64,000 bases of DNA from Thalia democratica (taxonomy: Eukaryota): the NCBI GenBank assembly GCA_965202585.1, contig OZ241826.1, forward strand, positions 19,282,001-19,346,000, given 5' to 3'. Made by a program: the position numbers and the translations under genes. Below are positions 16,785 to 64,000 of this stretch, piece by piece. The notes below the pieces were generated by a model. That model did not search any database, had not been told where the DNA came from, and saw nothing but the letters and a program-made list of their open reading frames with translations. The stretch's first letter is position 1. Each line of letters opens with the position of its first letter.

Positions 16785-17483
16785 AAATTTTGTTTACTAG
16801 GCCATGAAGTTTTAGAAACTTGTACAATAAAACTTTACATTTACAAAAATCTTTTAATTTTAATTTGGAATGTAATTACCCTTAAAAGATCAGTACTGTA
16901 ACTTAAAGTTAAATTAAAAAACAGTTCTATGTTGTTACAACAGAAACAAATTTTAATGTTCTCTATTTGTTATTATTATAGTAAGTACTTAATGGGCCAG
17001 ATATTTTTATTGGCGGGCCAAATCTGGCTCTCTGGCCGTTAGCTGCACACTCGTACATTACACAGTTAACTATAGAATTTTTAAAATGTGTAAACAAAAT
17101 AAAAGTATCTTTGTATTATTTTATACTAATTTATTTAATTAATTTCTAAACATGCTGAAGGTCGTAGAAATAAATAAAACACTGTCATAGTAGTTTCTTT
17201 TAGACAGTAGGAATAAATATATAAATTACGATTAGTTTTTGAATGCAGTCAGATTTGGCCCGCCAATAAAATATCTGGCCCATTAAGTATTTACTCTAAT
17301 AATAAAAAATAGAGAACATTAAAATTTTTCTGTTTTAAAAACATAGAACTGCTGTTTAATTTTACTTTAGCTTACAGTATTGCTTTTTTAATGATCACTA
17401 CATTGCAAATTAAAACTAAAAGAGTTTTTGTAAAGTTTTATAGTACAAGTTTCTAAAACTACATGGCCTAGTAAACAAAATTT
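16785..17483. repeat. Long inverted repeat, ~245-bp arms and ~220-bp spacer
   Basis: aaattttgtttactaggccatg...gggccagatatttttattggcgggccaaatct (16785-17025) is the reverse complement of agatttggcccgccaataaaatatctggccc...catggcctagtaaacaaaattt (17251-17483). Roughly 85-90% identity by eye. Confidence 0.9.
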
Positions 17484-19119
17484 ATTAAGTTCTATCGCTA
17501 AAATCATTTTTTTTGTAATCTCTTTACGCTGACTAAAAAAATATGCATTTGTAGCAAAGAAAACATTTTTTTAACACAAATATAAGTATATCATAAGTAT
17601 AAAGTTAGTTACTAGTAGTTTACTGGGTACTGGTTTATTGTTTTTAATTATTTTTATCATAAATAGTAAAAATACAACTGAATGTGTACTATTTATTGTA
17701 AAAAAACTGTTTGGTATAAAATCTGAAGGTTTCTTAAGTTCTTCTTGATTTGCCCATTCAAATCTTTTCGGCTAATGTTTCATGCACTAGTTATTCAAAC
17801 ATTGAGGTTTTGTTTATGCAGCTTCAGACATCAATTTAAGGTTGTATTAGACGTTTTTTTTTTAATATAATAACTAACTAACTCAATGATCGTTATATTT
17901 TGTTTAACAATTAGCAAATCTACTTTCCCCACAAAAAAGGTTGTTTAAAAGTTCTAGATATCCAATAAAAATTCGACGCAACTGTTACGTGTTATCTAGT
18001 TTGTTCGTAATAAAATACTAAATAAAATTATCATTCTAAACAGTTAACAAAGGAATAGTTTTATAAAAGCTATTTACTATAATATTTTTATTGTAGTCTT
18101 CATTACAAAAACGTGAATGCGATTTATATTAAAACCTTGTTTTTCAAACTTCTCATTTAAGTTTTAACAAATATTAAAGCCAGTGTAAAAACCTTTTATT
18201 TACTTACAGTGCAAAGCTCGGTGGTTGTACTCATAGCTTACGTTCAACTAATGCACTGTTAGTAGAAAAAATTTATTTCTTTGTTTTCGAATTTACTGGT
18301 AAGTTACAAAAGCGAAGTTTCTTAGTTTTTTCAAAAGTAACTTGATCCGCATCTGGCAAGTTCTCAGCTTATTATCAATTAGGATCTGGCCGGATCCGGA
18401 TCTTTGTCTTGGTAAATCACTAAATATAGATAGAGAAAGGTTAAATGATTTTAACTTTTAGTAATTTGAATATAATTTATTGGCTTATCACACATTTTTT
18501 ATTTAATACTCGAACTTAGAAAGATTGATATTGGAAAACAAAAATTTAAATTTATACAACGATAAATTAAGTCGTTTTTAAGTACACGTTTTTTATTTTG
18601 TTTTTAAACAAAAGTATATTTAATCCAGTGGAAGTAAAAAACTAAACCAGTTAAGATAGAATGTTTATTAGTTTTTTTAAAATATTTGAAACTAAGTATT
18701 GACTATGAAATAACTGTTTTAAATCCTTAATTATCAATGTTATATTTAGTTTGTTTAGATGTTGCGTATCGCGACCAGACCTATCTCCGGTATATTTTTA
18801 AACCAATCTTATTGTTACATTACTACTTTTGAATAAAGTTTGATTTCAGCTGCATTTTAGATTCAACATTTTTAAACGTAGTAAGTAGAACTTTGTTCAT
18901 TAATTAAACTTATTAACAAGACCGAGTTAATTATGATTTTTTTGTTGTAGACTATGTTTGTTACAAATGTTTGTTTTATTCAAATATTGTATTGTATGTT
19001 TATAATATTCTTACTAATTATAAATAACTATTAATTAATTTTTTATTCCTTTTGAGATGAGACTATTATAGTTATTTCTAAACAATTAGTAGGCAAAATT
19101 TATAAGTACAAGTTTTTTT

Positions 19120-19672
19120 ATTATTTTAGTTATGTTAAGGTTTCTGTTATAAGTTGAAGTTACTACTAAATTAATCAGTATTTATATAATACTTAAGCTT
19201 CATTATTTTATCACTTTTTACAATTATATTTAAAAAAAATGTTTGCATCTGAACTAAATTGTTTTTTGGATACTTAAATTTTAATTTTGTGATTTTTAAA
19301 AACAATAGAATTTTCATACAAAAAACTATAGACATTTTTAATTTGTTTTATAGAAATAAGAATAATTTCTTTGTAATTTTATGAAAAATTTATGTTTATA
19401 AAAGATATAATTTCGTTTGTTAAAAAACAGTTTTTTTTTACAAGCTTTTAAAGTTTTTTAGCTAGAATTAAAATGAATTTGTCTGTTCTATCAACGCTTC
19501 TTGCTTAGCTTTTTAGAAGCTACGACCATTTTGTATTCGTATCCAAAGTAAACTTAAACAAAATGTCATCAGGAACTTTCTGATATTTCTGAGTTTCATA
19601 CAAAACAGAAGACTGACTAAAAGTCAGTACAATAATGTAATTAACAGAAAATATATAAACAGTTAAGTATTA
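19120..19672 (-). repeat. Left arm of inverted repeat flanking Kelch-A (decayed Kelch-B-like sequence)
   Basis: Reverse complement of 21530-22100 (e.g. gtttgcatctgaactaaatt / aatttagttcagatgcaaac; atgtcatcaggaactttctgatatttctga / tcagaaatatcagaaagttcctgatgacat). Confidence 0.9.
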
Positions 19673-20087
19673 AGAAGTGATTAGTTTTTTATTATGATTA
19701 GTTTAGTTTACTTTAGTGATTTTAAAACTTTATGTAGGCAAAAACTACTAAGAAAAGATTTTTATATTAATTTATTTATGTTATAGTTTTAATCGATAAC
19801 CTGATAATAATAAGTCTTTGAATATATTAGTGCGTTTATTGTACAACAGATCATTTTCAAAATAAAAAAACATACGAAAAAGCAAAAAATATAACAAAAA
19901 GAATCCATAGAAAATAAACAAATACATAGGAAATGTTATTAACGTTTATATAAAAAGGTTCTAAACAACTAAATTACTGTGCAAATTTATAAACAACTAT
20001 CGAACGTTACATTTTACGTAAACAAAAGACTGAACAAACATTTGTAAGTCAATATATAAACACATTTATCATTTTCTGTTATGTAGC

Positions 20088-21059
20088 TTATACTTTGTAA
20101 TATTTGATACAAGATGGGCAAATAGAGCTTTGAGTAATTTCAATTGTATTACAACAAATGTTTGACCATTTTTCTTGATCTACATCATACATGTAAATAA
20201 TTGAATTTTTCAAATTATCATAAAAATGATAAAAAACAACTATATTATTTCCAATACTAAAAGCGTCAATCCAACAACTTGTTATAGTTGGTAGTTTTAA
20301 ACTAGATTTTAAGGTTGCAAACTTCCTTGAAAAACTGTCAAAAAGTTCACTGGTTGTGGTACTATACCCACCAATAACAAACATTTTGTTACCCATACTA
20401 ACTGCAGAATGATCATGTCTTTTTTCAATCATATCAGGTAAAAACTTCCATTTATTTTCATGATGATCATATGATTCTACTGATAATAAAATTCCAGTGT
20501 CATTAAAACCACCTGTAATAACAATTTTACCTTGGAAAACTGTACAAGCAGCACTACTTCTATTTACATTCAAATCTGCTACTTTGTTCCTTTTAAAAGT
20601 GTTGATATTATAACTATAACATGAACTAAGATTTGTATCACTGCTTTCAATCCATCCTCCGATTATAAACAGCCTTCTCATGAACGAACTAAGACAATAA
20701 TAAAACCGTTCCTTGAAGTATACATAGTGGTGTTTCCAAGCTTTTGTTTTTTCGGAATAAATTTCAACAGACGTACAAGAGCTATTTAACTTTTTGTAGC
20801 GATTTACGCAATCAAGAAAAGCATATATTTTAGAATTTATAGTTACAGCTTTCAAAAAATTATGTTGTTTCACCGTTGAAGGAAACTCATTTACTTCAAA
20901 ACTAGGTATTTCAATTTCTTCTACTTGATTCACAACTTTACCATTTCTGTCTCTTCCTCCAAAAACAAGAATACTGAAACCTTCTTGGTTACAATATCTA
21001 TTTTCATACAAAACATTTGGTACAAAAGGAGAAGTTAAAAATTTACTCTTTGATGTCAT
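20088..21059 (-). CDS. Kelch-repeat protein A, 323 aa, intact, no BTB/BACK domain
   Basis: Kelch GG/W repeats (LFIIGGW, IVITGGF..SVESYDHHENKW, MFVIGG). Single exon preceded by a tttag acceptor 7 nt upstream of the ATG (exon starts 21066). Confidence 0.9.
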   Translation of the reverse strand: MTSKSKFLTSPFVPNVLYENRYCNQEGFSILVFGGRDRNGKVVNQVEEIEIPSFEVNEFPSTVKQHNFLKAVTINSKIYAFLDCVNRYKKLNSSCTSVEIYSEKTKAWKHHYVYFKERFYYCLSSFMRRLFIIGGWIESSDTNLSSCYSYNINTFKRNKVADLNVNRSSAACTVFQGKIVITGGFNDTGILLSVESYDHHENKWKFLPDMIEKRHDHSAVSMGNKMFVIGGYSTTTSELFDSFSRKFATLKSSLKLPTITSCWIDAFSIGNNIVVFYHFYDNLKNSIIYMYDVDQEKWSNICCNTIEITQSSICPSCIKYYKV

Positions 21060-21529
21060 AGTGAACCTAAATAGAGTGTAGTGCTAAATAGCAGTAAATA
21101 TTTATTAATTTGAAATATAATTGATCGTATAAGAAATAAACTCTGTATATTTATTATCATGTTAGTAATAAATTATTTAGCTTAGAAAATAACCAAATAA
21201 TAAACAAATTACTACATTTAAATAACAATTGATATTTTGTTTTTACAAATACAATAGATATCTGGTTAGATTTTTGTACATAATTTATTACAAAAATAGT
21301 TTTTTTTTTGAATAATTTTTTTGAAAATTTTTGATAGTTTTTTTACATTTATTAATTTTTTTAAATTAATTTTAGATTTTCTATAGCCCTGTTAAAGGGG
21401 GCATTGAGAAAAAATTCAGGAAAACCTTATCTAAACTTATAAACATCATTGGTAATGTAAAGAAACCGTATCTGTAAAATCACTGTTGTAAGCATATGTA
21501 GTTTTATTAAAAAGAAAGTTTTTTTTCAA

Positions 21530-22100
21530 AATACTTAACTGTTTATAAATTTTATGTTACTTATATTATTGTAATGTCTTTTAGTCAGTGTTGTCTTTTG
21601 TATCAAATTCAGAAATATCAGAAAGTTCCTGATGACATTCTGTTTAAGTTTACTTTGGACTAAAATACAAAATGGTTGTAGGTTCTAAAAAGCTAAGAAA
21701 GAAGCGTTGATAGAATAAAGAAAATTCATTTTAATTCTAGCTAAAAAACTTAAAAGATTGTAAAAAAAAAAATGATATACTCATAAAGTACTTTGACACA
21801 AACGAAATTATATATGTTTAAAACATAAATTTTTGATAAGATTTTAGTGTATTCATTTTTATTTCTATAAAAAAAATTAAAAATGTTTATAGTTTTTTGT
21901 ATAAAAATTAAGTTGAGAAGTTTAGTTTTTGTTTTAAAACTCACAAAATTAAAACTTTAGTATCGAAAAGTAATTTAGTTCAGATGCAAACATTTTTTTA
22001 AATATCATTGTAAAAAGAAATAAAATAACGGAATTTAAGTGTTAACTAATAAATGATTAATTTAGTAGTAACTTAAACTTATAATAGAATGTTAACATAA
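21530..22100 (+). pseudogene. Right arm of inverted repeat, decayed Kelch-B-like 5' coding sequence
   Basis: Reads QKVPDDILFKFTLD (cf. Kelch-B SQVTNDVVFKFTFD), then TKLYMF (cf. KELYVF), with many stops. Confidence 0.65.
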
Positions 22101-25100
22101 AAAGCAACAAAATAAGTAATACCTACTTTCTTTTAATTTTTTTATTGTCAAACTACTTAATTAGTGAAATTTACGAAGTTACACTGATGAAATTGACTTC
22201 TTTTTCTATCATAAGTAAACTTTAACACAGTAGCTTTAGCTTTTTGGAAGCAGTGTATATTTTGGTACAAGATTAATGACTGATTACAATTCGTTTTAAC
22301 TCAAAATGAAAAACTGTAAGGCTAGTGAAAAACTGCTATACTTATGAAATACTTTTGCATAAACGTAATTAAATTTTTATAAACATTTATTTTAAGATAA
22401 AGTTAGTGTATAATAATTAGTCCTACATGAAATACAATGAAATTGTGTTCAACTTTTTCTAAAAAAATTGTCTTTGTAAGTTTACTTTTACTTTAAAACT
22501 CACATATTAAAATTAAAAATATCTGATGAAAATTTAGTTGTTTAAAACCGTATTTTTTAGGACTGCATAAAATAATAAAACAGTTGAACAAAAGCAATAA
22601 TTTAGTTAGTAATATCTAAAACTTATACTAAAAAATTTGTTTAAAAATCACAAAATTTGTTAAATACAAATAAGTTAAAATTTATTATAATTTTTTTTTG
22701 TAAAACAGTTCTAATAGAAACTACTTATTTCATGACTTATTTAAACAATAAGATCTTTTGTCCAAGTTATTGTTTTTAACCTTAAATAAAGAAACGAGTA
22801 TACTACTTCTTTTTAAAAAAATAACTTAGTTAAAAAGCTAATATAACTTAATGTAAAATTTAAAAAAAAATACTAAAACCAAAAAACTATTTAAATTAAT
22901 ACATTTAAATTTAATATATGATATAGAACTGTAGGATTTTAAAACGTTAGGAAATATTTTAATGTTTTATTACCACAAAATTTATAAATTTATTTCGTAA
23001 AATTTCTTAAATCTTATTAGCTAGTAAATGTGTAGTTTTCAAAGTCTTTACGAAAAATTTGTACTACTAAACTAAAAAACTTCAATTTAAATTTAACAAA
23101 AATTCAAAAAAGATTACAATTAAGGTTTGAATACATATAATAAAATCAATAAATTAACGTATTTAAGCGATTAAATTAATTAGGCACTTCTTTTTTTTAT
23201 CACAAAACTAATTGTACCTATTAAACAGTTATTTTATGCATTCATTAGTTTGTAATGTGATAGAAAACTTCAATATAAATTTTAAAAAGTCTTTTTTTAT
23301 CTTAGTAGTAAAGCTGTAGACATATAAACAAGTAAGACTATCTAGTAAAACAATCAGTAAGAAACTTTGATTTTGGTTTATTAAAACCCTTTAAGAGCTA
23401 AATCTTATAATTTCATAAATCAGTTATAAATGTCAAACATACAAAATAATCATAAAACTTTATCATACTTTAGAAAAGAAAAAAGTAGAAAATAAAAAAT
23501 AAGCAGTTCTAATACAATTAAGCATATTTAATATAAAAATATCATCAATTAAAAGTTTGAAAATTTTTTTAACATTTCTCCATTTGTAACGTAAGTTATC
23601 GAAAATGTGGTCAAAAAGATAAAATAGATGAAATTTTTTTTGCATAATATAAAAGATATATTTGTTTACTTTTACATTAAGATAGCAAAAAATAGTTCGT
23701 ATAAGAAGTACTTTTTGTTATGTTTTAAAACGTATTAAAGGTTTAGTTTAAAGAAAACTAATTTAATATTTCTCTCTAACACAAAGTTGAATACTGGCTA
23801 CAATTAGTTTTTAAAATTCTGCTGAGAAATAGTATAATATATTAACATAAATGAATAATGAAAATTATTAAACTATGTTACATAAAGCCGCTTAAACAAT
23901 TTTTTTTAATTTATTTGACGTAAATATTTTTTTTTAACTAACTACCTCGTATATTTTTTCAATGATGTTAATATTTATCGTTCGATTTCGTTTGAATCTC
24001 AGGTCGTCAAGTTATTTTAATTAAAAATAAATTATTTTTTTTAATATGAATGATTGTACTTTTGATACTTGTAACGATATCAAATGTTTTTTTTTTCCCA
24101 TTTAGAACCTTTAAAAAACCTTAATTTACTTATTTGTTTTTTCATCAAGCCTTAAAAAAAAAGTTCACGTTTGTTGTCCGTCGTTATTCAAAAATAAATT
24201 ATTTTATTCGCTAAGTTATTTGAACTTGATCTGCTTAACTAATTTTTTTTACATATCATTGAATATGTTTTTCTAACAATAAGACAAGTTAGTCACTAAT
24301 TATAGTAAGTACTTTGTTTTAAGTTTCTTGTCTAAAAAATGTTTTGTTATTCTCGTTAGCTTCACAATGTAGAGTAGAACTTTCTCGTTGTCATGAAAAA
24401 CAAGAAAAAGATTTATATTTAAGTTTAACCATTATTAACAATTAATATAAAGTAGTTATTCTTTTTTGGTACACATATATATATATATATATATACATAA
24501 TTTAGCTTCTTTTTTTTTCCTTAAAGTATTTATTTTTAACAGAGCTCTGTTGAAGTGTGTTATCCCGTTAACGCACAGAAACATGTGTTAGTGTAATAAA
24601 GTAAAAATAATGTTTAACTTGTTATTTTTATACAATCCACTGAACTTGTTTCGCTTGGATCTAAGTAAACAAACTAAAAAAAATCTATTTTCAAATAGTT
24701 AGACATTATCGATACAAATGAAAGTAAAGGTATTGAATTTTTGAAACTGGAAAAATAACACTTATTGATTTGCATATTTACTTTAATTTTATCAAGACAA
24801 GCATTTTCTGTCTAATTATTATTGTCATTAAATAGTTTTTATATAGGACTTAAAAAAAAGTAAACTAAAGGATATTACTTGATAACATGAAGTGAAATTT
24901 TAACATATTACACAGTTTCAACATAATTTAAAAGTTACTGTTATATTATTGTATTGTACGTTTTTGCTATAATTAAATGATTCTAATATTAAATTGAATT
25001 ATATTATTAAACAAATTACAGGTATTTAGTGATAACTATGACTGTAGAATTTAAACTATAAATGTTGCATTGTCGAAAAATTTATTTTATTTTAAGTTTA

Positions 25101-25521
25101 ACTATCTAAGTTGTAGGAGGTAATAAAAACAAAATAAACTACATTCAAATTTTTTTCTTTGTTTTTAGCCTGTAATTTATTAACTTCTCAATAATTATTT
25201 TTTTTGTTTTAAAACATTTTAATACTTTCAGAGACAAATCCAAATTAAAGAAATCTAAACCAACATGAAGTCTCAAGAGAAATTTTAAGTTTTTCTGGAA
25301 AACAATTATGTATTTTGTGTATGCTTCAAGACTTTTATAACACATCTTATGTAAAAAAATCATAAATAATTATGAATTTTTCCAGATACTAGATTGATAG
25401 AGAATCTAACGAGATATTCAACACAATAAAAAATTTTTAACTAAATTTAGTTTTGATTTTATATCTTGCTTTCCGTTTAATGCCTTTAAATTCAAAAAAA
25501 AACTTAAAAAACAAAAAAAAA

Positions 25522-26322
25522 TCAATACTTTTGTTTACAACGTAAAGATTTATTTATGAACAAAGCTAAAAGAAAATGAAAACTAAATAAATAAGAACAA
25601 AAACACATTATACATTCACCTAACAAAAATTGCTCGATAAAACGTAATGAATAAATCTTCAAACTAAAAGTTTCATTCTTTGTATCATACAAAATAAACT
25701 GATGAGTGTTGTCCGATAAAATGTTTAATAACACAACTTTATTTCCAAAACAACAAGCACTAGATTTCCTTACTTCAAACTTTTTAAAATCAATTTCACA
25801 GTTAATTGAAGTAAACTTTCTTGTTATACTGTTAAAAACCTCCCAGGTTTTATTATATCGTACAGCAGTTACAAACATTTTGTTACCAACGCCAACTGAA
25901 GAATGACCGCATCTTCTTTCGATCATGTTGGGTAAACAAGTCCATTTGTTTTCATGATGGTCATATGCTTCTACTGAATTCACTAAACTTAAAAGGCCTG
26001 GAGAAAATTTACTGCCTCCACTAACAACAATTTTACCTTCAAAAACTGTGCCTGTCCCGGACAGTCTACTTTTGTTCATTCTTGCTATACCATACCAATT
26101 TTTTAGTTTGAAATCGTATTTGTGACTCAGCTCACCATATTTATTGAAGACATATAGTTCTTTTAAAAATAGAAAATTATTAGTCCATCTACAAAATTCT
26201 GGAAAGTTAGAGGAAGAATTCTGAAAAACTACCCCTTTTGAACAAAAGTAATCACAGAAGCTAGCTTTGATGAACATTTTGTCGTTAAAAACAGGCTGGA
26301 TGGTTTCTTCATTAAGTAGCAT
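25522..26322 (-). CDS. Divergent Kelch-repeat protein B, copy 1 (5' frameshifted, possible pseudogene)
   Basis: 266-aa ORF with IVVSGG..SVEAYDHHENKW..NKMFV. The upstream homologous frame (MICSQSSILHQNRHCSQ, ATG near 26450) is cut off by a net +16-nt insertion near 26329-26348. Confidence 0.75.
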   Translation of the reverse strand: MLLNEETIQPVFNDKMFIKASFCDYFCSKGVVFQNSSSNFPEFCRWTNNFLFLKELYVFNKYGELSHKYDFKLKNWYGIARMNKSRLSGTGTVFEGKIVVSGGSKFSPGLLSLVNSVEAYDHHENKWTCLPNMIERRCGHSSVGVGNKMFVTAVRYNKTWEVFNSITRKFTSINCEIDFKKFEVRKSSACCFGNKVVLLNILSDNTHQFILYDTKNETFSLKIYSLRFIEQFLLGECIMCFCSYLFSFHFLLALFINKSLRCKQKY

Positions 26323-28046
26323 AGACTTGGTTGGTTTCTTTATTAAGCACTTTTAAGAAACTTTTATCAAAAGTAAACTTGAACACCACATCATTGGTTA
26401 CTTGAGAGCAATGTCTGTTTTGATGCAAGATAGATGACTGACTACAAATCATTTCAATTTTAGCTGAAAAATTGTAAGAACTCACAAAAACAAAAACTTA
26501 GTTGGAAAGTGTAGTTACCTTTGAAGAATTACTTAATTTTTATACCTTTACAACATTTTTTAACTACTCAAAAGTGTATTAATTTCAAATACAGACGAAT
26601 GAAAAGTTAACACTTTTCAAATGAATAATACTAAATTAATACAGTAACGTGTTGAAGTAATGAAAAAAAAAGTAAAACATTTAACTACCAAATTAAATAT
26701 GTCTCCTTAATAGTTTAATTGTTGTTCAGATATGTATATTTTGAAACAAGTAATTTTATATATTAATTTGTTTGTAATGAATAGTAAAACTACAATTCAT
26801 CGATTTTTTTTGAAATAGCATAAATCTTATGAATAGAACTTTGAAAGTAAGAAATTTGACTTAAATATAAGTCCGCTTATAAGTTATAATATATTTTAAG
26901 AATCTGTTAGCGTGTAAACATCCTTTTGGAGCTAAATACACAAAATATATAAATAACCAAAACCTTACATACCCACTAAGTAAAAAAACTATCATATAGT
27001 TATTTTTATCAGTGCACAAGCAGTTTTTGTTTCATTTAGCACAATTAAAAAATACATCAATTAGTAAAAATTTGTACAAAAAATTTACAAATGATGTCGT
27101 AAGTGAACAAAAAGTGTTTCTAAATAAACAAACTAATTTAGAGTAGGGGCGTGTCTAGATCTTCATCATTGGAGTTGCACAATCTTTTTGTTTGAAAATA
27201 AAGTATTTTCTGTAGAAGCTTTTCATAATAGACACTATAATATAATATAGCTCTCTATTAGATAACTGTCTATAATTTCTATAAAAACGTTTAAACTTTA
27301 GAAGTTTAGAAAAGACCAGTGAATAGAACTAAAAATCTTAATATGTAATCCAGTTCTTTACTTTTTACTAAACAAAAGCTTAAAAATAATCCTTATTCCT
27401 GTTTTTAATTACAATATGAAAATTTTGTCTTACATTGTGAAACTAACATGAATAATATAATATTTTATACGTAAGAAACTTAAGACAAAGTACCAATCAA
27501 AATGACTAGTTAAGTCTTAATGATAGAAAAAAATGTTCAATGATATGTAAAAAAAAAATTAGTTAAAGAGTTCCAATTAAAATACTTAAGCTAAAAACTC
27601 AATTTAAATCAGAAACAAACTTTATTTCTGAAAACAAATTGACAAAAGACGTGAACCACTTCTTACAACTTGATGAGAAAAAATAGGCTTTTTAATGTTA
27701 AAAAATTAAATTATTGTATGATTCCGTCTCAAGTATGCAAAGTTAAAAATGAAACCCTTGGAGTTGTATAATCATTCAAATATCCTCTTATAAACACTTT
27801 TGAATGACCAATTTTAGAATGAAGTTCTATTTTAAAAATTGATCACCTTTTGTAGATATAAAACTTTTGTATAATTTATATTTTATTTCGACAAAAAACT
27901 TATAAAAAGTACTTCATTTTGACGTATTTATTCAAAAAAATATGAATTAAACTTTACATAATAACTAAACTGATATAAATTTTTAGTGAGTTATTTAAAA
28001 CGTAAACCATATTCAATCACTTTTTATGATGCTTTTTTCAATTTTA

Positions 28047-28420
28047 TATCGGGTCGATAGTCAACAGAAAACCAGTCAAAACGAGCCCCTGGTTGAAAGC
28101 TTTTGTTAGTAGAATGCAAATGCTTTTATTTAATTTGTTTACATTAAGTTAACATAAAGTTATGCGGAAATAAAGTATTATCAAAATAAATTAATAAAAA
28201 AACATTAAATTGTTGACTGTTTGCTTAAAACAGCTCGATATAAAATAAATTAAGAAATTTTTCATGCTGTAAAAATTTAACTAAATGTCTGTCGTACGCC
28301 GAGTTTATATTTCTTAACATTATGATTTAGCTTCTAAATATCTTATAAACATTTTCCATACAAATTGTCTTACTTTTCAAACCAACTACCTAATCAGATA
28401 AAACGTAATAAAGAACAAAA
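28047..28420. mobile_element. Dispersed repeat, same family as 1236-1600
   Basis: Direct similarity to 1236-1600. Carried into unit 2 at 45214-45590. Confidence 0.55.
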
Positions 28421-29972
28421 TAATTTAAAATTGTTAAGTTATTAGCTTGTTTTAAAACACACTTAAACTTATTTCAATTCTTTAACTTTTAACTAAGAGA
28501 CTTTCATAAGTTTATGTACATTTTTCAAGTCAAAGTAAAATTTGATAACCACATGACTACCTTGTGTCATTTTATATTTACAATCAATTCTTAGACTTAT
28601 GAAACTATTCTAAATAAAGTTCATATTTAAATCTCAAATTTAGTTGTCGATATCTCAAAAAAATTAATAAACAAAAGTGTGTTCTATGGTAATATGTCAA
28701 TTAAAACTCTGAAAAATTATTTTTTTTACAAAAAAAAAACAAGGGTAACAATTGAAAACTTTAATATGAGTTTATTGATAACTACTTAAAATTGTTAAAA
28801 CATGAGTTGTGTATGCTATTAAAATAAGCCTTGCATTACAACCTAATAAATCTTTCGAGTGCATAAACTGTTTCATTTTAATAATTCATAGTGTAGATTT
28901 TTATAATAGGCTCGGAGGTTTAAATAAAGTATAGATGTGTTAAATTGCTCTTTGTAATAGTCTTTATTAAAAACTTTCGTAGTAAAAATTTATTTCTTCG
29001 AGAACAGACCTTTACTTATATAACAAGTTTCTGGTAACTTTAATTAAAATATGATATTCAATCCTTTTCTTTATGCTAATACATTTTATTTTTCTAACAA
29101 AATAATTAATTTATTTATGAGTTTGTAAATTATTGGTATCAAAAAAATAGTTAATTTTTATTCGTCATACAACTTTGATTGTACCTGTGAGTGACGGGCA
29201 AGAATAATTAGTAGTATTATTTTTTATGCCGGAAATCTAAAACTACTTTTACGCGCCTCACCGTAATGCTAAATATAAAACAGAAAAAAAGAAAAGATCA
29301 TGCAGTTTCGTAGTTAATATGTATTAAATAAATGTATAATCATTTAGTTAACTGACAACCAAATAAAAGTTAAATTTTATAGAAATTATACAAGTATTAA
29401 ACCAAAGCTAGTTGTGTACATACTGTTTTCAATCGAGTAACTAGGCGCGGGTTTGATTTGTCTGCGAAGCACAGTCTTCCGAACTTAAAGATTTTTTTTA
29501 TTATAACAAACTATGACATGAAAAAAAAAACAGATTAAAAGTTCAATCAACACATGTTAAGCTAATTGGTTTACACTATTTTTAGAGGCTTTTTAGTTGT
29601 CAGTGTGGATATAAAACAATAAACTACTAGACTTTTATTACTAAGTGTTTTAATGACGAGATAGAAAAAAAAACTAAAAAATAATCTGTCTATGTTGTCA
29701 AAAATTTTTTTTTAATTTAACTAAAAATGGTACAATACGATTGTAAGCATATAAAATTTTAGAAACTATATATTTCAAATGTTAAAAAGTATTTTATGAA
29801 AATAATCTCACACGTTTATAATTTCTAAAGCACTTAGTTTATAGTTTTTTAAAAAATACTTCAGTTATAACATATGTCAACCTAGCAAAAAAAAAAACTG
29901 TTTTTTTAAAAAAACAAAAGCTATAGAATAATAAATTATTTTAAAGTTCTTGTTCGTTTTTCCATCACATCA

Positions 29973-32861: not shown

Positions 32862-33849
32862 CTGTAATGATGTAAATTACTAAAGTGGTTTTTAATAAAG
32901 GAGTGATCAATATAATCATTTTTGACGTATATATAAATATTTTGGTTTGAAAAATCATCATGATATTTTTGTGATTAATGTCTAAAATTAAAAACTAAAA
33001 CGATAAAATAAGTCGTTTTAAAGTAGACGGTTTTGTTTTTCTTTCTAAACAAAAGTACTTTTAATCCAGTGGAAGTAATAAACTAAACCAATTATTCAAG
33101 TATTTTTATAATTAACACATTGAAACTAGGTACTTTGAAAAAAACTGTCAGTTTTTATATCCTTAATTAACAACAATTTTATATTTAGTTTGTTTAGCTG
33201 CTACGTATCCCACCCACATCAACAACCGGTTTTCATTTATTTATAAATTAATTTTGTTGTTAAATCACTAATTTTAAACAAAGTTTAATTTTTGCTGCAG
33301 TAGTTTTGAATTTTTGATTCATTAATTTACGTAGTAAGTAGAACTATGTTCATTAAGTAGACTTCTTAACCGAGGTCGAGTTTATTATAGTTTATTTATT
33401 TAGACTATGTTGGTGTTTAATTTTTTTTTTAATATATTATGCTTATGGTTACGATTATTAATTCTTAATTATCTTTTATTCGACCTTTATAGTGATTTTT
33501 AAACTTTCTGTAGGCAAAACTACAAGAAAAAATTTTTATATTATTTTATTTGTGTTAAAATTTCAATAACCTTATAATAATAGGCCTTTGAATATATAAG
33601 TGCGTTTGTTGTACAACAAGATATTAAAAAAAAAAAAAACGAGTGAGCAAGTACTCTAACAAAACAAATTCATAAAAAATAAACTAATACTTAAAAAATG
33701 TTATTAACGTTTATACAACAATGTTCTAAACAACTAAAATATTGTAAAAATATATAAACAATTATGAAACGTTACAATTTGAAAATAAAAAACTGAAGAA
33801 AAATTTGAAAGTCAATATACAAACATATTAATCATTTTTGTTATGTAGC

Positions 33850-34820
33850 TTATACTTTGTAATATTTGACACAAGATGGGCAAACAGAACTTTTAGTAAT
33901 ATTTATAGTATTACAACAAACTTTTGACCATTTTTCTTGATCTACATCATACATGTAAATAATTGATTCTTTCAAATTATCATAAAAATGATAAAAAACA
34001 ACAATATTATTTCCAATACTAAAAGCGTCAACCCAACATCTTGTTATAGCCGGAAGTTTTAAACTAAATTTTAAGGTTAAAAACTTCCTTGAAAAACTAT
34101 CAAATAGTTCACAGCTTGTGGTACTATACCCACCGATAACAAACATTTTGTTACACATACTAACAGCAGAATGATCATCTCGTTTTTCAATCATATTAGG
34201 TAAATAAGTCCATTTGTTTTCATGATGATCATATGATTCTACTGATTTCAAATCTACATTGTCATTAAAACCACCCGTAATAACAATTTTACCTTGATAA
34301 ACTGTACAAGCAGCATTACGTCTGGCTACATTCAAGTCTGCTACTTCATTCCTGTTAAATTATTCATTTCATAAAAATAACACGAACTTAGTTTTGTATC
34401 ACTGCTTTCAATCCATCCTCCGATTATAAACATCTTTCTCATGAACGAACAAAGACAATAATAAAACCGTTCCTTGAAATATACATAGTGGTGTTTCCAA
34501 GCTTTAGTTTTTTCAGAATAAGTTTCAACAGACGTACAAGAGCTATTTAACTTTTTGTAGCTTCTTACGGAATCAAGAAAAGCATATATTATAGAATTTG
34601 TAATTGATACTTTCAAAAAATTATGTTGTTTCACCATTGAAGGAAACTCATTTACTTCAAAACTAGGTGTTTTTATTTCTTCTACTTGATTCACAACTTT
34701 ACGATTTTTGTCTCTTCCTCCAAAAACAAGAATACTGAAACCTTCTTGGTTACAATATCTATTTTCATACAAAACATTTGGTACAAAAGGAGAAGTTAAA
34801 AATTTACTCTTTGATTTCAT
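33850..34820 (-). pseudogene. Kelch-repeat protein A copy 2, split by a 1-nt deletion
   Basis: Two ORFs (34341-34820 and 33850-34335) together match Kelch-A end to end. A T4 run in copy 1 is T3 here (~34356-34358). Confidence 0.85.
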
Positions 34821-50728: not shown

Positions 50729-50821
50729 CTGCAAGTTACAACAAAGCATTAAAATATTTTAACTTTTGTTTTAATTCCACCTAAACTTTATATTTGCAAA
50801 GTATAAATTGTTTAACCTTAA

Positions 50822-51037
50822 ACAAAAACATCGGCGAAAGTCAGCAGAGCAGAATGCCTGGACTTTCGTTTGCCGTGAGACAAGCTCAAGTTTAACAATA
50901 GTGTTGATCACGCCAATTTGATCATCAGACCGCAACGTTTTTCGGTTGTGACTGACTGATGAGTCCTAATAAGGACGAAACCGGTCTCAGTCTACCAAAA
51001 CTTGTGGTCTGATGATCGATTTAGCGTGATCAACTCT
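50822..51037 (+). mobile_element. 216-bp ribozyme-bearing insertion (Penelope-like/retrozyme-like)
   Basis: Flanked by the exact direct repeat attgtttaaccttaa (50807-50821 and 51038-51052). GC-richer than the flanks, self-complementary, and contains a hammerhead core. Confidence 0.8.
50950..50992 (+). ncRNA. Minimal type I hammerhead ribozyme
   Basis: Stem I GACUGA/UCAGUC; core CUGAUGA (50956-50962); stem II GUCC-uaauaa-GGAC; GAAA (50977-50980); palindromic short stem III ACCGGU; predicted cleavage after GUC at C50986. Confidence 0.92.
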
Positions 51038-51271
51038 ATTGTTTAACCTTAATTATAAAAGGTCATAAAGATGTAATAAAGGTTTTAAAATTTTTTTCTA
51101 ACTACAGTTCTTAAAAAAAACAATCGCAGCTAAAACTAAAATTGTGAAATTTGTTTTACTAACAACTTCAATAAGTATATACTATAAAAATCAAAAGCAT
51201 ACCCTAGTATATGTTTTGAATCGTTTTTCGATGCGGTACTTAAGGTAGTTATAACCGTAGTAAGACTTCAA

Positions 51272-57335: not shown

Positions 57336-57409
57336 AAAGGCTTTGCGGAACCCCTGAGAGGCGTCGCGGAACCCTAGGGTTCCGCGGAACCCCATTTCAG
57401 AAGCACTGA
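57336..57409. mobile_element. Right end of a hAT (Charlie-like) element, relic
   Basis: gcggaacccctgag..gcggaaccctagggttccgcggaaccccatttcagaagcactg, a typical hAT terminal motif ending CACTG. Left end not found. Confidence 0.55.
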
Positions 57410-57565
57410 AGTACATAATTTGTCTAAAATTTAGCTGAAATATTAACTTTTTTTTTTTACACAAAAATAAAATCAAATACTATAAACTTATTTGTTGTAA
57501 ACTTATTTAAGTAAAATGTAATCAATACAGCTTAAATACAATCTTGTGTTGTTATATATTTTTAG

Positions 57566-58391
57566 AACGGAAAATCTACAAACTGGGTCGAAGAAAAGGA
57601 AAGTAATGAATGCTTTAAATCAAAATATCTAAAAAAATATGCGGTAATAAATAAGTAAATCAAATGTTTCTATAAAGATAAACACGAAAAAGCTGAGATC
57701 CAAAAGAAAATGTAAGTACATCTTTTAATTTTTAAACATTAATGTCTAAAATGGTACTATCATTAAAGTTTGTGTAGTTTTTGTGCACATAGCTAGTTAA
57801 TGAAATAAAACTAACATTGTATGCTGTACTCAAATTATTTCTTAACTAAATAAAAAATGTAAAAGTTTTTTTTTTCTGATATATTTAATTTTTTGGCACA
57901 TTAAACCCTAGTAATACTTTTTTGTATATAACGTACATTTTGTTATGTAATATCTTGTACAAAAACTAACGGATTATAAATATCTAAGCTTTTTAAACTT
58001 AATAATAAATAAAATATTTATAAGTAATTTTAAATTAAATCTTAGTTATTATTTCAATTTTTTTTTAGAGCTGAGGAAGTTTTCTTTCCAGTGCCAAATA
58101 ATGATGCAAGCACAACTGATACAAATAATGATATGGTTTGTGGTTGCTATACTTTTAGTTAAATTTAAATTAAATTCATATTATTATGTTTTAATCAGTT
58201 AAAGTTATCAAAAACAACATTTAAAATAGATAATTATTTAATACTTAGAATGTTCAATCTCTAGGGCTTATTTACTTTATTTAAGTCATCTAAAGTTTTC
58301 TATAACAAACTTTTTTAAAATAAACAACATAATAACATTTTTTTGCTTATGTTGCATTTTGTTTTAATATTTCGAGGAAATGGAATACTAA
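57566..58391 (+). pseudogene. Gene C paralog, inverted, last three exons
   Basis: Exons 57566..57711 (NGKSTNWVEEKESNE.., TAA at 57656), 58069..58135 (AEEVFFPVPNNDASTTDTNNDM) and 58377..58391 (EMEY*) match the gene C exon boundaries. Confidence 0.8.
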
Positions 58392-58879
58392 TGATGTGAT
58401 GAAAACACAAACAGGAATTTTAAAATTATTTCTTATTCTACAAATTTTGTTTGTTTAAAGAAATGATTTTCTATTTTACCTATAGGTTGACATATGTTAT
58501 AACTGAAATATTTTTTATAATCTTATAAGTTAAGTGCTTTACAAGTTATAAATATGTGAGATTATTTCCATAACTGATTTTTTAAATTTTTAGATCTTAT
58601 AGTCTAATAAACTACTATGCTCTTAATCGTTTTGTACTATTTTTAGTTTTATGAAAAACAGAAAATAATTTCTGACACCATAGACAAACTAGTTTTTTTT
58701 TTTTTTGTCTCATCATTAAAATACTTGATAAGTAGTAATAAAAGTATTGTAGTTTATATTTTTATGTTTACACTAACAGCTCGAAAACCTCCGAAAATAA
58801 TGTAAACAAATTAGATTAACAAGTGTTGATGAAATTTTAAAACCTATTATGTAATTTCTGTCGTATATAGTTAATTAGT

Positions 58880-59760
58880 TCTAAAGCCCATTTCAAAGGT
58901 CGGCAGACTAACCATGAAGACCAAATCTAATCCGCGTCTAGTTACTAGCAAAATTTAAATGCTTTTATAACTACTAAAACAAATAATATTATTTTACTTG
59001 TTAGTTAACTAAAAGGATTACATAAATATTATTTATATTAAATACTAAACTGCATGAGGTTTTTTCGTATTGTATTCAGCATAACAGTGACCCGCGTAAA
59101 AATAGTTTTAGATGTCTGGCATAAAAAGTACTTCTAAATATTCTTGCCCGTCACTTATACTAGGGTACAGTTATAAGACATATAAATGTTTACTAGTTTT
59201 TTCGATATCAATAAATTACAAACTCTTTCAATATGATAACACTAAGATACTTCATTAGATTGTAAAATGATTTGTAAATAACTAATTATAAATCGATTAC
59301 TTTTTTAACTTTTTTACCATGCATCAATATAAAGAAGAGGACTCTGTATATACTTTAACTTGTCGATTAAATATGCCGCAAACTTGTTATATAGTTAAAG
59401 GTTTGTCAATGAAGAAATATAGTTTTAACTATACAAGTTGTCAATAAAGACTATTACGTAGAGAAGTTTAACACAAATATACTTTATTTGAAATGTTTAA
59501 GCTGATAATAAAAATACAAACTTTGATTTATTATAATGAAACAGTTCAAATTCTCTAAAGAATTATGATGTTGTAATGCAAAACAGTAAAGTAAACGGGT
59601 GCACGACTATACAAGTTCAAGCAATTTGAGTTTCGACAACTCAAGTTTTAACAATTTTGAATAAATATGAATAATCTCTTATTAAAGTATTGGAATGTTG
59701 CCCTTGTTTTTTTTTATAAAACTAAATTTTCAAAGTTTTATTTTTCTAAAATTCAAATAT
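58880..59760 (-). repeat. Inverted paralog of 28690-29490
   Basis: ccgcgtctagttact, cccgcgtaaaaatagttttagatgtctggcataaaaa and ttgcccttgttttttt match the reverse complement of the 28690-29490 / 45700-46090 sequence. Confidence 0.8.
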
Positions 59761-60076
59761 ATAACAACTTGTCCAAATTATTCAATTCTATAAACTTTCA
59801 ACTTTTCTCAGGGAAATAAATAAATTACTTGTTGATATTATTACTTGTATAAACCTTTTAAAAATAATGTAACTTTTTTTATCAAAAATAATTAGATTAA
59901 AATACAGTTCTTTATTAGAAAACCAACATTTTAAACGAAACTACCCAGGAATTAATTGTTACATAAAATAAAGTAGTGTAATTAAAAACAACATACTTAT
60001 CTTGGTATTTATGTTGTTTTTTATTAGCTATCATCAATAATAAAATAAATTTTAGAGTTTTTGTACACTTTAATGC

Positions 60077-60821
60077 ATTATCTAAGCTCAAGTATCCTTT
60101 CTGTTTAATGCTAATGTACTGAATACTATCTTAAACGTATACAAATTTCATCGTTTTTCATATCAATTTTTTTTATTACAGCTATATTGATAAAATGAAT
60201 TAGAGTCGAATATTACCGAAGTAGATATTGCTACCAAGATGAAGCTGATAACATTCTGTTTAATTTTGATTATGATATATGTAATAAATAATGACTGTAG
60301 CTTTTTAAAAGTAAATATTTAAAACTAAAATCAGGAGATATTAAGACTGATTCTAAAGACGAGTTGTTAAAACTTGCCATGCATTTACTACAAAATTCAC
60401 AAAACACTTATAACTCTTCATGAAAGTACAAATGTATCCCCACTGAAACATCGGAGATATTTTTAAAAAATTTTTTATGCCTTTTGAAGATAAGTAACTG
60501 CAGAAATCAGCTTTGATGAACAACTCGTCTTTACAATCAGTCTTAGTATTTCCTGATTTTAGTTTTAAATATTTCTTTACTTTTAAAAAGCTACAGTTAT
60601 TATTTATTACATATATCATAATCAAAATTAAACAGAATGTTATCAGCTTCATCTTGGTAGCAATATCTACTTCGGTACAAAACATAAATTCGACTCTAAT
60701 TCATTTTATCAATATAGCTGTAATAAAAAAATTGATATGAAAAACGATGAAATTTGTATACGTTTAAGATAGTATTCAGTACATTAGCATTAAACAGAAA
60801 GGATACTTAAGCTTAGATAAT
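60077..60821. repeat. Near-perfect hairpin (arms 60077-60368 and 60519-60821, 150-bp loop) made from a Kelch-B-like pseudogene 5' end
   Basis: Arms differ by only a few substitutions and two small indels. Minus strand reads VLYRSRYCYQDEADNILFNFD and CSFLKVKK...ELFIKADFCSYLSSKG, cf. Kelch-B ILYQTRHCSQ..SFLKVKK..KMFIKASYCDYLSSKG. Confidence 0.92.
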
Positions 60822-61044
60822 TAGTTTCAAAAATTTTAAACTCAATGTTCATGTTAAAAACTATCAGGAAAGAAACTATGATTAAGACTATCAGAAAAAA
60901 AAAGGCTATGATTTGAATACTATACTTACCTAGGTTGATGTTTTAAGTCCGTATTAAAGAAACTATAATACGAAATAAACTTGTTATAACTTAAAATAAA
61001 CTTTTTGTACTAAAATAAATTCAAGCTAAATTATTATATCAATT

Positions 61045-64000
61045 ACATTCAAAAACTAATCGTAATTTATATATTTATTCCTACTGTCTAAAAACAATTA
61101 CTATGACTATATTTTATTTATTTCTGCGACCTTCAACATGTTTAGAAATTAATTAAATAAGTTTGTGTAAAATAGTACAAAGATACTTTTATTTTGTTTA
61201 CACATTTTAAAAAATATATAGTTAACTGTGTAATGTAGGAGTGTGCAGCTAACGACCAGAGAGCCAGATTTGGCCCGCCAATAAAAATATCTGGCCCATT
61301 AAGTGTTTACTATAATAATAAGAAATAGAGAATATTAAAATTTGTTTCTGTTGTAAAAACATAGAACTGTTGTTAACTACATTGCAAATTAAAATTAAAA
61401 GAGTTTTTGTAAAGTTTTATATTACAAGTTTCTAAAACTACATGGCCTAGTAAGACAAAATTTAATCAAGTTCTATCGCTAAAATCTTTTTTTGGTAATC
61501 TCTTTACGCTGACTAGAAAAAATGCGCAATTGTAGCATAGAAAATATTTTTTTTTAACACAAATATAAGTATATCATAAGTATAAAGTTAGTTACTAGTA
61601 GTTTACTGGGTACTGGTTTATTGTTTTTAATTATTTGTATCTTAAATAGTAAAAATACAACTAAATGTGTACTATTTATTGTAAAAAACTGTTTGGTATA
61701 CAATCTGAAGGTTTCTTAAGTTCTACTTGATTTACCCATTCAAATTTTTTCGGCTAGTGTTTCATGCACTCGTTATTCAAACATTGAGATTCTGTTTATG
61801 CAGCTTCAGACATAATCTTTAATTTGTGTTAGACAGTATTTTTATTAAACTTATTAGTTTGTATTAGAGGTTTTTTTAATTCAATATAAAAACTTACTTA
61901 GCTCAACAATCATTATGTTTTGTTTAACAATTAGCAAATCTACTATACCCACAACAAAGTTTGTATAAAAGTTTTAGATATCCTATAAAAATTCGACGCA
62001 ACTGTACCGTGTTATCTAGTTTATTCGTTACATATTACAAAATAAATTTATCTTTCTAAACAGTTAACAAAAGTAAAGTTTTACAAAAGCTATTTACTAT
62101 TATGTTTTTATTGTAGTCTTCATTACAAAAACGTGAATGCGATCTATATTAAAACCTTTTTTTTTAAACTTCTCATTTAAGTTTTAACAAATAGTAAAGC
62201 AAGTGTAAATATCTTTTATTTACTTACAGTGCAAAGCTCGGTGTTTGTACTCATAGCTTACATTTAACTAATGCACTGTTAATAGAAAAAAATGATTTCT
62301 TTGTCTTCGATTTTACTGGAAAATTACAAAAGCGAAGTTTCTTAGTTTTTCAAAAGTAACTTGATCCGCATCTGGCAAATTCTCAGCTTTTTGTAGAATT
62401 AGGATCTGGCCGGATCCGAATCTTTGTCTTGGTAAATCACTAAATATAGATAGAGAAGTCTTAAATGATTTTAACTTTTAGTAATTTGAATATAGTTTTA
62501 TTGGCTTATCACACATTTTTTATTTAATACTCGAACTTAGAAAGACTGTTATTGGAAAACAAAAATTTAAATTTATACAACGATAAATTAAGTCGTTTTT
62601 AAGTACACGTTTTTTATTTTGTTTTTAAACAAAAGTATATTTAATTCAGTGGAAGTAATAAATTAAACCAGTTAAGATAAAATGTATATTAGTTTTTTTT
62701 AAATATTTGAAACTAGGTATTGACTCTGAAATAACTGTTTTAAATCCTTAATTATCAATGTTATATTTAGTTTGTTTAGATGTTGCGTATCGCGACCAGA
62801 CCTATCTCTGGTATATTTTTAAACCAATCTTATTGTTACATTACTACTTTTAAATAAAGTTTGATTTCAGCTGCATTTTAGATTTAACATTTTTTAATGT
62901 AGTAAGTTGAACTTTGTTCATTAATTAGACTTATTAACAAGATCGAGTTAGTTATGAATTTTTTATTGTAGACTATGTTTGTTACAAATGTTTGTTTTAT
63001 TCAAATATTATATTGTATGTTTATAATATTTTTATTAATTATAAATAACTATTAATTAATTTTTTATTCCATTTGAGATGAGACTTTTATAAGGATTGCT
63101 AAACAATTAGTAGGCAAAATTTATAAGTACAAGTATTTTTTATTATTTTAGTTATGTTAAGGTTTCTATTATAAGTTGAAGTTACTACTAAATTAATCAG
63201 TATTTATATAACACTTAAGCTTCATTATTTTATTACTTTTTACAATTATATTTAAAAAAATGTTTGCATCTGAACTAAATTGTTTTTTCGATACTTAAAT
63301 TTTAAGTTTGTTATTTTTAAAAACAATAGAATTTTCATACAAAAAACTATAGACATTTTTAATTTGTTTTATAGAAACAAAAATAATTTCTCTGTAATGT
63401 TATGAAAAATTTATGTTTATAAAAGATATAATTTCGTTTGTTAAAAAACAGTTTTTTTTACAAGCTTTAAAGTTTTTTAGCTAGAATTAAAATGAATTTG
63501 TCTGTTCTATCAACGCTTCTTGTTTAGCTTTTTAGAAGCTACCACGATTTTGTATTCTTATCCAAAGTAAACTTAAACAAAATGTCATCAGGAACTTTCT
63601 GATATTTCTAAATTTCATACAAAACAGAAGACTGACTAAAAGTCATTACAATAATATAATTAACAGAAAATATATAAACAGTTAAGTATTAAGAGGTGAT
63701 TAGTTTTTTATTATGATTAGTTTAGTTTACTTTAGTGATTTTTAAACTTTCTGTAGGCAAAAACTACTAAGAAAATATTTTTATATTAATTTATTTATGT
63801 TATAGTTTTAATCGATTACCTGATAATAATAAGTCTTTGAATATGTTAGTGCGTTTATTGTACAACAGATCATTTTCAAAATAAAAAAACATACGAAAAA
63901 GCAAAAAATCTAACAAAAAGAATCCATAGAAAATAGACAAATACATAGGAAATGTTATTAACGTTTATAAAACAAGGTTCTAAACAACTAAATTATTGTG
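61045..64000. repeat. Segmental duplication unit 3 (partial), close paralog of 17030-19981
   Basis: 61265-64000 is colinear and highly similar to 17251-19981, including the left IR arm (~63140-63695). 61045-61265 is the reverse complement of 17030-17245. Confidence 0.92.

Follow-up and report, generated by a model that had tools for sequence, protein, structure and literature searches.

Three long inverted repeats in a Kelch gene supercluster of Thalia democratica

Gene content of the window and its supercluster

The window, i.e., the whole stretch of 64,000 nucleotides analyzed here, is a slice of a supercluster of about 0.7 Mb that consists of multi-gene cassettes and lies on a single chromosome (C1:18.74-19.46 Mb). 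The host is an animal with a genome of 801 Mb and a GC content of 23%. The genes of the cassettes are the stand-alone propeller genes Kelch-A and Kelch-B, 'gene C' with multiple exons, and a zinc-finger gene of the FCS type. A literature search for an expansion of the Kelch family in tunicates retrieved no papers.

An intact, intron-free Kelch-A gene encoding a stand-alone propeller of 323 aa is located at 20088-21059 on the minus strand (Pfam Kelch_1, E 2.6e-29). The Kelch-A gene of cassette copy 2 (33850-34820, minus strand) is split into two ORFs through a frameshift near codon 154. There are 18 copies of Kelch-A on C1, most of them with open frames. Two copies of Kelch-B were identified on the minus strand by tblastn and Pfam, one with a shortened propeller (25522-26322) and one of 295 aa (39724-40611). 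In the Kelch ORFs of the window Pfam recognizes Kelch repeats, but no BTB or BACK domain, as is the case for stand-alone Kelch beta-propellers; homologs of about 320 aa contain Kelch domains only. An earlier note on this DNA had listed Kelch relics on both strands (55-430, minus; 37465-37730, plus). Both were recovered by tblastn. The minus-strand relic spans 241-393 (E 4e-8); the other, short and Kelch-B-like, lies on the opposite strand at 37580-37663 (61%, E 7e-4) and is rated as marginal because the match comprises only 28 aa.

The array has grown via many segmental duplications, with nearly half of the copies inverted. Self-BLAST placed about 23 of the 53 duplicated-segment pairs inside the 64-kb window in inverted orientation, among them a copy of the 'gene C' block (57415-59743, minus strand; 70% to 28699-30975). 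Together with the junctions of the three inverted repeats described below, these pairs point to inverted copying as a routine mode of rearrangement of the array. In a 2-Mb Kelch array on C5, the scored Kelch copies are likewise divided between the strands (55 plus, 32 minus). A paralogous segment at C1:18.80 Mb (P2) carries extra inverted repeats with arms of 1.3 kb and 1.7 kb.

Anatomy of the inverted repeats

The three long inverted repeats reported in the earlier note (16785-17483, 19120-22100 and 60077-60821, here IR1, IR2 and IR3) were recovered within a few bases by a repeat finder, by self-BLAST and by a stricter BLAST. Their arms are copies of nearby sequence of opposite orientation that belongs to the duplicated unit, which makes them inverted segmental duplications.

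The left arm of IR1 (A, 16784-17026, 243 bp) is 87.7% complementary to the right arm (A', 17250-17484). The single-copy loop between them (L, 17027-17249, 223 bp) is inverted relative to cassette copy 3 of the window (61046-61261). Left arm and loop are colinear with the ancestral single-copy unit, here inverted, and older cassettes contain arm A plus loop once only. The right arm is the first part of a block (17247-19981) that is repeated directly at 61262-64000. IR1 represents the head-to-head junction of an inverted and a direct cassette fragment which have about 243 bp in common. IR1 is present in copy 1, and copy 3 shows the single-arm state.

The arms of IR2 (19130-19671 and 21530-22100) are about 560 bp long, 82% identical, and enclose the intact Kelch-A ORF. 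The ancestral arm (21530-22100, minus strand) is non-coding, lies 470-1040 bp upstream of the Kelch-A start codon and occurs in about 16 cassettes; three-frame reading revealed no ORFs in it. The derived arm (19130-19671, plus strand) is an inverted copy of this upstream region, placed downstream of the gene. It is bounded on the left and on the right by direct repeats (DR1, 19025-19143, and DR2, 19671-19789, both plus strand; 71%, E 1.5e-16). In cassette copy 2 the upstream arm is present (35261-35892) and the downstream inverted arm is absent; the counterpart of the direct repeats is single there (33457-33564) and represents the empty site. Copy 3 has the derived arm at 63164-63691 (plus strand), with its partner just past the window end at 65551-66103 (extended coordinates). 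Only four cassettes have an arm in the downstream placement, and these arms are 96-100% alike; the downstream arm arose once and is now found in four cassettes. The other plus-oriented copies of the arm lie upstream of plus-strand Kelch-A genes and are therefore parts of whole inverted cassettes.

IR3 consists of two arms of about 300 bp (60077-60368 and 60519-60821) that are 94% identical with gaps, and 99% identical in two ungapped blocks. It adjoins the inverted 'gene C' block. The right arm (minus strand) and the loop of about 150 bp (60369-60518, minus strand), which is part of a Kelch-B-type N-terminal coding remnant, are colinear with the 5' ends of Kelch-B genes. A 110-aa ORF (60353-60685) runs through this arm and matches Kelch-B (E 6e-9). 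An older cassette (L004) has the same 5' part followed by Kelch-repeat coding sequence. This colinearity sets the polarity, with the right arm being ancestral and the left arm (60077-60368, plus strand) derived. IR3 is a fold-back inside a Kelch-B-type gene, in which an inverted copy of the gene's own 5' part has replaced the propeller-coding part.

The earlier note had considered two of the repeats to be made of Kelch-family sequence. This holds for IR3, which derives from the N-terminal part of a Kelch-B-type gene, and not for IR2, whose arms, compared with shuffles, are not significantly similar to the coding sequence of Kelch-A or Kelch-B, nor to the 5' region of Kelch-B (z 0.8-1.6); tblastn with Kelch-A and Kelch-B and three-frame reading likewise gave no direct similarity. 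The sole link between the IR2 arm and Kelch is transitive and covers roughly 100 of 560-650 bp. It runs via a neighboring diverged tandem unit (22126-22800, minus strand), which aligns with the arm at z 18 and with the 5' region of Kelch-B at z 12, and in which the stretch 22205-22318 resembles Kelch-B residues 25-62 (E 3.6e-6).

Origin and age of the repeats

The repeats are probably best explained as three separate old scars of inverted copying in the lineage of one cassette subfamily, which were later duplicated passively. A genome rich in fold-back elements also suggests fold-back or MITE-type transposons, or one transposon inserted twice in opposite orientation. Elements of this type are present in the window itself (14836-15027 and 50890-51047), at L001:9343-9987 and in the control DNA, which comprised 20 random 10-kb pieces of the genome (200 kb). 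The two control fold-backs are members of dispersed families, for which a first look gave 3105 and 709 candidates, and all other fold-backs examined in the window and the controls are dispersed transposons as well. Like MITEs, the three repeats are hairpin-shaped DNA of a few hundred bp. Unlike MITEs, they are not dispersed over chromosomes: their arm sequences are confined to C1:18.74-19.46 Mb, apart from a few other Kelch clusters with distant relatives at about 70% identity, and since the arms are restricted in this way IR1, IR2 and IR3 are not transposons. The arms also hold fixed positions within the cassette, and in each repeat the ancestral arm belongs to the regular make-up of the cassette. 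A transposon origin was therefore rejected; it is largely refuted and hardly credible. Non-transposon local inverted repeats number three in the 64-kb window versus none in the 200 kb of controls (conditional P about 0.014), which is not a fair test because the window was chosen on account of these repeats, and because the proper yardstick would be other tandem arrays.

Chimeric long reads sometimes create near-perfect palindromes, and the DNA runs available for checking probably share their sample with the assembly, so that IR3 might be suspected of being an assembly artefact. Against this, one DNA-run unitig crosses the junction of flank and arm, and a second reaches 30 nt across the junction of arm and loop (one short of the 31 nt required). 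The depth of the arm unitig is about 1.7 times that of unique sequence, and the left arm, the loop and the inner part of the right arm recur in a diverged paralog. IR1 and IR2 also have replicates in paralogous copies. An artefact was rejected on these grounds and is given next to no probability.

Complex rearrangements with inverted duplications and fold-back junctions in segmental duplications are known from human genomic disorders, where they are attributed to replication-based template switching of the FoSTeS/MMBIR type. The window resembles these cases in the inverted copies of nearby sequence at block junctions, in IR2 as an inverted templated insertion flanked by duplicated target, in the short spacers between the arms of IR1 and IR3, and in a short direct repeat at a deletion junction in P2. 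It differs in the old age of the events (6-18% divergence) and their fixation in the germline, within a gene array of a marine invertebrate, and in that the junctions, with the exception of the later arm deletion, are too decayed for single-base microhomology. The template-switch origin proposed in the earlier note stands in outline. At IR2 a templated inverted insertion, a flanking duplication and an empty site in a paralog were all found, and an inverted insertion of 540 bp bounded by a direct duplication of about 120 bp is as expected from two replication template switches. Here about 540 bp of non-coding Kelch-A upstream sequence would have been copied in reverse to a site downstream of the gene, and about 120 bp of the target duplicated; a likely route is a switch of replication from its template to the opposite strand nearby, which was copied, followed by a return to a position a little behind the exit point. 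We infer this route from the structure of the junctions only. IR1 and IR3 show just the head-to-head junction geometry, with spacers of 150-223 bp, and similar structures could result if broken inverted copies were rejoined by NHEJ, or if cassettes that were inverted beforehand recombined with each other.

The same note had called the process recurrent. Three separate events did take place; they are, however, old and were later copied passively by segmental duplication rather than generated afresh in place. Positions 14539-23726 of the window correspond to C1:18740182-18749311 at 95.6% identity, and as this paralogous block carries both IR1 and IR2, the two were inherited together. The intact gene exactly between the arms of IR2, and the retention of this arrangement in four cassettes, might indicate a working arrangement in which the arms let the Kelch-A segment flip or pair the ends of a long Kelch-A transcript. 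This is very improbable: arms of only 82% identity are a poor substrate for recombination, Kelch-A has the same orientation in all four two-arm cassettes, the downstream arm is absent from most intact Kelch-A copies, and recent block duplication (91-96%) accounts for the presence of the arrangement in four cassettes.

The age of IR3 is seen from P2, the flanks of which are 94.6% identical to those of IR3. P2 retains 56 nt of the right arm in addition to the loop and the complete left arm, and is without the outer 246 bp of the right arm, a stretch bounded by the 7-bp repeat TTAGTTT. IR3 thus predates this paralog, which later lost one arm. Since P2, which differs by 5.4%, is younger than the hairpin, the near-identity of the hairpin's arms is most simply explained by gene conversion from arm to arm. 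In large palindromes, e.g., those of primate sex chromosomes, such conversion keeps the arms uniform, and the arms of IR3 are likewise more similar than would be expected from its age; the scale is different, about 300 bp as compared to kilobases to megabases, and at IR3 the conversion is only inferred. Alternatively, the 99% blocks could stem from selection to maintain the hairpin in perfect form, in which case a function would be indicated.

Hairpin RNA and the meaning of the locus

The earlier note had further proposed that the repeats couple the expansion of the family to RNA-based dosage control. In the corresponding scenario IR3, and perhaps IR1 and IR2, would be a hairpin RNA (hpRNA) or endo-siRNA locus, in which a Kelch-B-type promoter drives a stem of about 300 bp and the resulting siRNAs dampen the Kelch family. 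The minus-strand transcript of IR3 is indeed predicted to fold into an almost perfect stem of this length (dG -455 kcal/mol, z -68), whereas IR1 (88%) and IR2 (82%) would give imperfect stems. The source of the IR3 arms is the 5' part of a Kelch-B-type gene whose upstream region is retained, and their 99% blocks are more alike than expected for a structure older than the paralog. Piwi/Argonaute domains were detected at several loci of the genome; a Pfam search for the Dicer dimerization domain gave no match, but neither did its control in any genome, so that this negative carries no weight. There is also a precedent for hpRNAs born from the family which they silence (10.1101/2021.08.05.454923).

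The sequence of the arms speaks against this scenario. In 154 kb of cluster sequence no exact match of at least 17 nt was found between the IR3 arms and intact Kelch genes, the truncated paralog being the only match, and genome-wide, where identity was the only measure of complementarity, the arms are at most 72% identical to anything else. With no siRNA-length identity to the intact Kelch genes of these 154 kb, IR3 argues against their regulation by dsRNA. Moreover, its arms represent the N-terminal part preceding the propeller and not the Kelch repeats, the arms of IR1 and IR2 contain no Kelch coding sequence, and P2 lost one arm with no obvious consequence. An hpRNA locus is thus considered unlikely, the proposed dosage control is unsupported, and no evidence for a function of the repeats was found.

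In Drosophila simulans, Nmy and Tmy are hpRNA suppressors of the Dox family that make siRNAs and are strongly complementary to their targets (10.1101/2021.08.05.454923; PMC10292708; PMC10317233). IR3 is similar in being a long inverted repeat that stems from one gene of a rapidly expanding family and could fold into a long hairpin RNA; it differs in that no siRNA-length identity to intact family members was found. It is improbable, though conceivable, that IR3 is a living hairpin-RNA gene, born by fold-back in a Kelch-B-type gene, kept perfect by selection or gene conversion, and silencing an unsampled Kelch-B subfamily or its own truncated paralogs. If so, it would be a deuterostome counterpart of the Dox/Nmy system of Drosophila. 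If the hairpin made siRNAs against the expanding family, the pattern of a gene family breeding its own RNAi suppressor would extend from flies to a chordate relative, and a handle on the role of the very large stand-alone Kelch family would be gained. The evidence at hand gives the locus a more modest value: as three old, passively inherited scars, the repeats illustrate neatly how a fast-evolving tandem array is shaped by inverted template switching and fold-backs, and IR3 adds the caution that the near-perfect arms of a palindrome need not be young.

Organization of the Kelch array

The window extends over C1:19282001-19346000, has a G+C content of about 23% throughout and belongs to a supercluster of duplicated cassettes on chromosome C1. 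Only eight ORFs of at least 90 aa are present in the 64 kb, and five of these encode Kelch-repeat proteins without BTB or BACK. An intact copy of Kelch-A, a stand-alone Kelch propeller gene of 323 aa, is located on the minus strand at 20088-21059; a second copy (33850-34820) is broken into two ORFs of 159 and 161 aa by a frameshift near codon 154, and a third, also intact, lies just beyond the window end. Copies of a second such gene, Kelch-B, occupy 25522-26322 and 39724-40611. The nearest database relatives are Kelch-only proteins of about 320 aa from marine metagenome assemblies (50-54% identity). The family of stand-alone, intron-free Kelch propellers of about 325 aa is very large, with 5694 first-look candidates in the animal's own genome. 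All 124 copies that were scored had E values below 1e-90; they occur on both strands, most with open frames, and 87 of them lie at C5:77.25-79.24 Mb (55 plus, 32 minus). Eighteen Kelch-A subfamily members fall within C1:18.74-19.41 Mb; 15 are minus-strand copies and 3 are plus-strand copies. Kelch arrays occur on C1, C2, C4, C5 and C10. Kelch relics had been proposed for both strands of the window; that at 241-393 (minus) was confirmed by tblastn, whereas the one at 37580-37663 (plus) was recovered but is marginal.

Self-BLAST paired 17247-19981 with 61262-64000 (91%), 19680-23726 with 33457-37462 (85%, the Kelch-A cassette), 24723-27302 with 38803-41364 (90%, Kelch-B), 27296-28453 with 44464-45629 (90%), 29095-32562 with 45700-49163 (88%, the multi-exon "gene C"), and 28699-30975 with the reverse of 57415-59743 (70%). 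Inverted pairs account for 23 of the 53 duplicate pairs in the window, so inversion is commonplace among the copies made in this array.

A 158-bp fold-back (76%) was also observed at 50890-51047. Elsewhere on C1, two Kelch-A cassettes at C1:18805073-18812811 stand in opposite orientation, 84% identical and 4.3 kb apart, and a larger inverted repeat with 1.3-kb arms (87%) surrounds a truncated Kelch-B-type remnant in the paralogous region C1:18799170-18803467 (L002:2170-3461 and 5124-6467).

Local character of the inverted repeats

The three long inverted repeats described in the earlier note, here IR1, IR2 and IR3, are real, and their positions hold to within a few bases. In a search of the whole 801-Mb assembly the strong matches of each fell entirely inside C1:18.74-19.46 Mb, with weaker matches (about 70% identity) in a few other Kelch clusters at C2 6.4-9.2 Mb, C4 16.6-16.7 Mb and C1 12.4 Mb. 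With arm matches confined in this way to the supercluster and a few related clusters, identification of the repeats as transposons was rejected.

The other fold-backs checked were all members of dispersed families. That at 14836-15027 (192 bp) belongs to a MITE-like family with at least 536 candidates, whose terminal repeat of about 94 bp also occurs as solo copies at many loci. A 645-bp palindrome (96%) at C1:18749343-18749987 (L001:9343-9987) is a high-copy transposon with at least 495 candidates and consists of two terminal repeats of about 320 bp; many copies are 98-100% identical, so it was recently active. Two control fold-backs, from twenty random 10-kb pieces (200 kb in total), came from dispersed families with 3105 and 709 candidates. 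The count of non-transposon, local inverted repeats is therefore three in the 64-kb window versus none in 200 kb of controls (conditional P about 0.014), but the window had been chosen because of these repeats, and the controls were random pieces, whereas other tandem arrays would make the fair comparison.

Structure and history of the three repeats

The stretch 14539-23726 is 95.6% identical to C1:18740182-18749311, at the exact end of which the 645-bp palindrome is inserted. Both IR1 and IR2 are carried by this paralog, and both are therefore older than the duplication.

The arms of IR1 (16784-17026 and 17250-17484, 87.7% identical) enclose a 223-bp loop. The unit of arm plus loop is single in older cassettes, and the full palindrome is found only in the window and its 95.6% paralog. 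In copy 1 about 100 bp of inverted "rest" are followed by A, L, A' and "rest"; copy 3 (61046 onward), which has a single arm, runs L', A', "rest". Two cassette fragments thus meet head to head in IR1. IR1 may have been derived by deletion from a large repeat of the type seen in P2, a paralog at C1:18.80 Mb whose inverted repeat of 1.3-kb arms contains both orientations of the IR1 unit, 1.7 kb apart, or it may have arisen on its own.

IR2 (arms 19130-19671 and 21530-22100, 82%) encloses Kelch-A. On the minus strand its arm sequence occurs in about 16 copies, always upstream of a minus-strand Kelch-A, which is its ancestral position. Six copies are on the plus strand. Two of them, at C1:18888103 and 18808926, precede a plus-strand Kelch-A and so are parts of whole inverted cassettes. 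The remaining four, downstream of Kelch-A at window positions 19103 and 63124 and at C1:18744739 and C1:18804462, are 96-100% alike; the downstream inverted arm therefore had a single origin and was then copied with its block. On either side of the inverted insert (19144-19670), the stretches 19025-19143 and 19671-19789 form a direct repeat (71% identity, E 1.5e-16); cassette copy 2 has this sequence once (33457-33564), without the insert. This junction structure points to two successive template switches in replication, which would have left an inverted templated insertion and a duplicated target. The arms contain no ORFs, and neither the coding sequence of the two Kelch genes nor the Kelch-B 5' region resembles them significantly (z 0.8-1.6). 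They are related to the adjoining tandem unit 22126-22800 (z 18), which includes a piece like Kelch-B residues 25-62 (z 12); the part of each arm traceable to Kelch-B is at most about 100 bp and includes no Kelch-repeat sequence. Upstream of Kelch-A, 21149-22706 is itself duplicated in tandem, in units of about 570 bp whose 60% identity marks the duplication as old.

IR3 (arms 60077-60368 and 60519-60821, loop of about 150 bp) lies in a Kelch-B-type gene. DNA-run unitigs span the junction of flank and left arm (59963-60119), another (60286-60446) extends 30 nt past the arm/loop junction, one less than the 31 nt needed to score as a bridge, and the collapsed arm unitig has a depth of 59-68 versus 34-44 for unique neighbours. 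The right arm and loop are colinear with Kelch-B 5' ends (40226-40532 = 60403-60723), and the 110-aa ORF 60353-60685 is similar to residues 40-138 of Kelch-B (E 6e-9). In L004, an older cassette that immediately precedes the window in the opposite orientation, the same upstream blocks and 5' part lead directly into Kelch-repeat coding sequence, and therefore the left arm is the derived piece: the 5' part of the gene was copied in inverted orientation and took the place of the propeller-coding part.

The arms of IR3 are 94% identical with gaps, and identity to the partner arm rises to 99% in the blocks 60077-60173 and 60214-60315. The sole gap reflects 7 nt deleted in the left arm only (60174-60213 versus 60678-60724), the longer form being kept in the right arm and in a distant paralog. 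In the paralog C1:18801644-18802131, whose flanks match the window at 94.6%, the left arm and loop are present, but the right arm consists of its inner 56 nt; the missing outer 246 bp are bounded by the 7-bp repeat TTAGTTT. The hairpin therefore predates the split, and the paralog later lost the arm. Given this age, the 99% blocks are best explained by arm-to-arm conversion; the alternative is that selection for a perfect stem keeps the arms alike.

An origin by inverted template switching, as the earlier note had it, is thus reasonable, and for IR2 is backed by the junctions. Its "recurrent" process corresponds to three events, but all are old and were later copied passively.

The proposed double-stranded RNA role and the nature of the array

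That a gene family can give rise to hairpins that silence its own members is known from the Dox family of Drosophila simulans and its Nmy/Tmy hairpins (10.1101/2021.08.05.454923; PMC10292708; PMC10317233). A minus-strand transcript of IR3, if made, would be predicted to form a stem of about 300 bp (dG -455 kcal/mol, z -68). Argonaute/Piwi genes are present in the genome; a Dicer domain search gave no match, nor did its control search, and it is hence uninformative. Across 154 kb of the cluster, no Kelch gene shares an identical run of 17 nt or longer with the IR3 hairpin, and the truncated paralog alone gave such matches; among its other matches in the genome, identity does not exceed 72% even for the best. 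Kelch coding sequence is absent from both IR1 and IR2. The proposal that the repeats couple Kelch expansion to RNA-based dosage control finds no support here, and the sequence evidence counts against a regulatory reading. Structurally, the inverted repeats are ordinary for a gene array as dynamic as this one, with IR3 as one candidate hairpin that would be worth a look given RNA data from the species.
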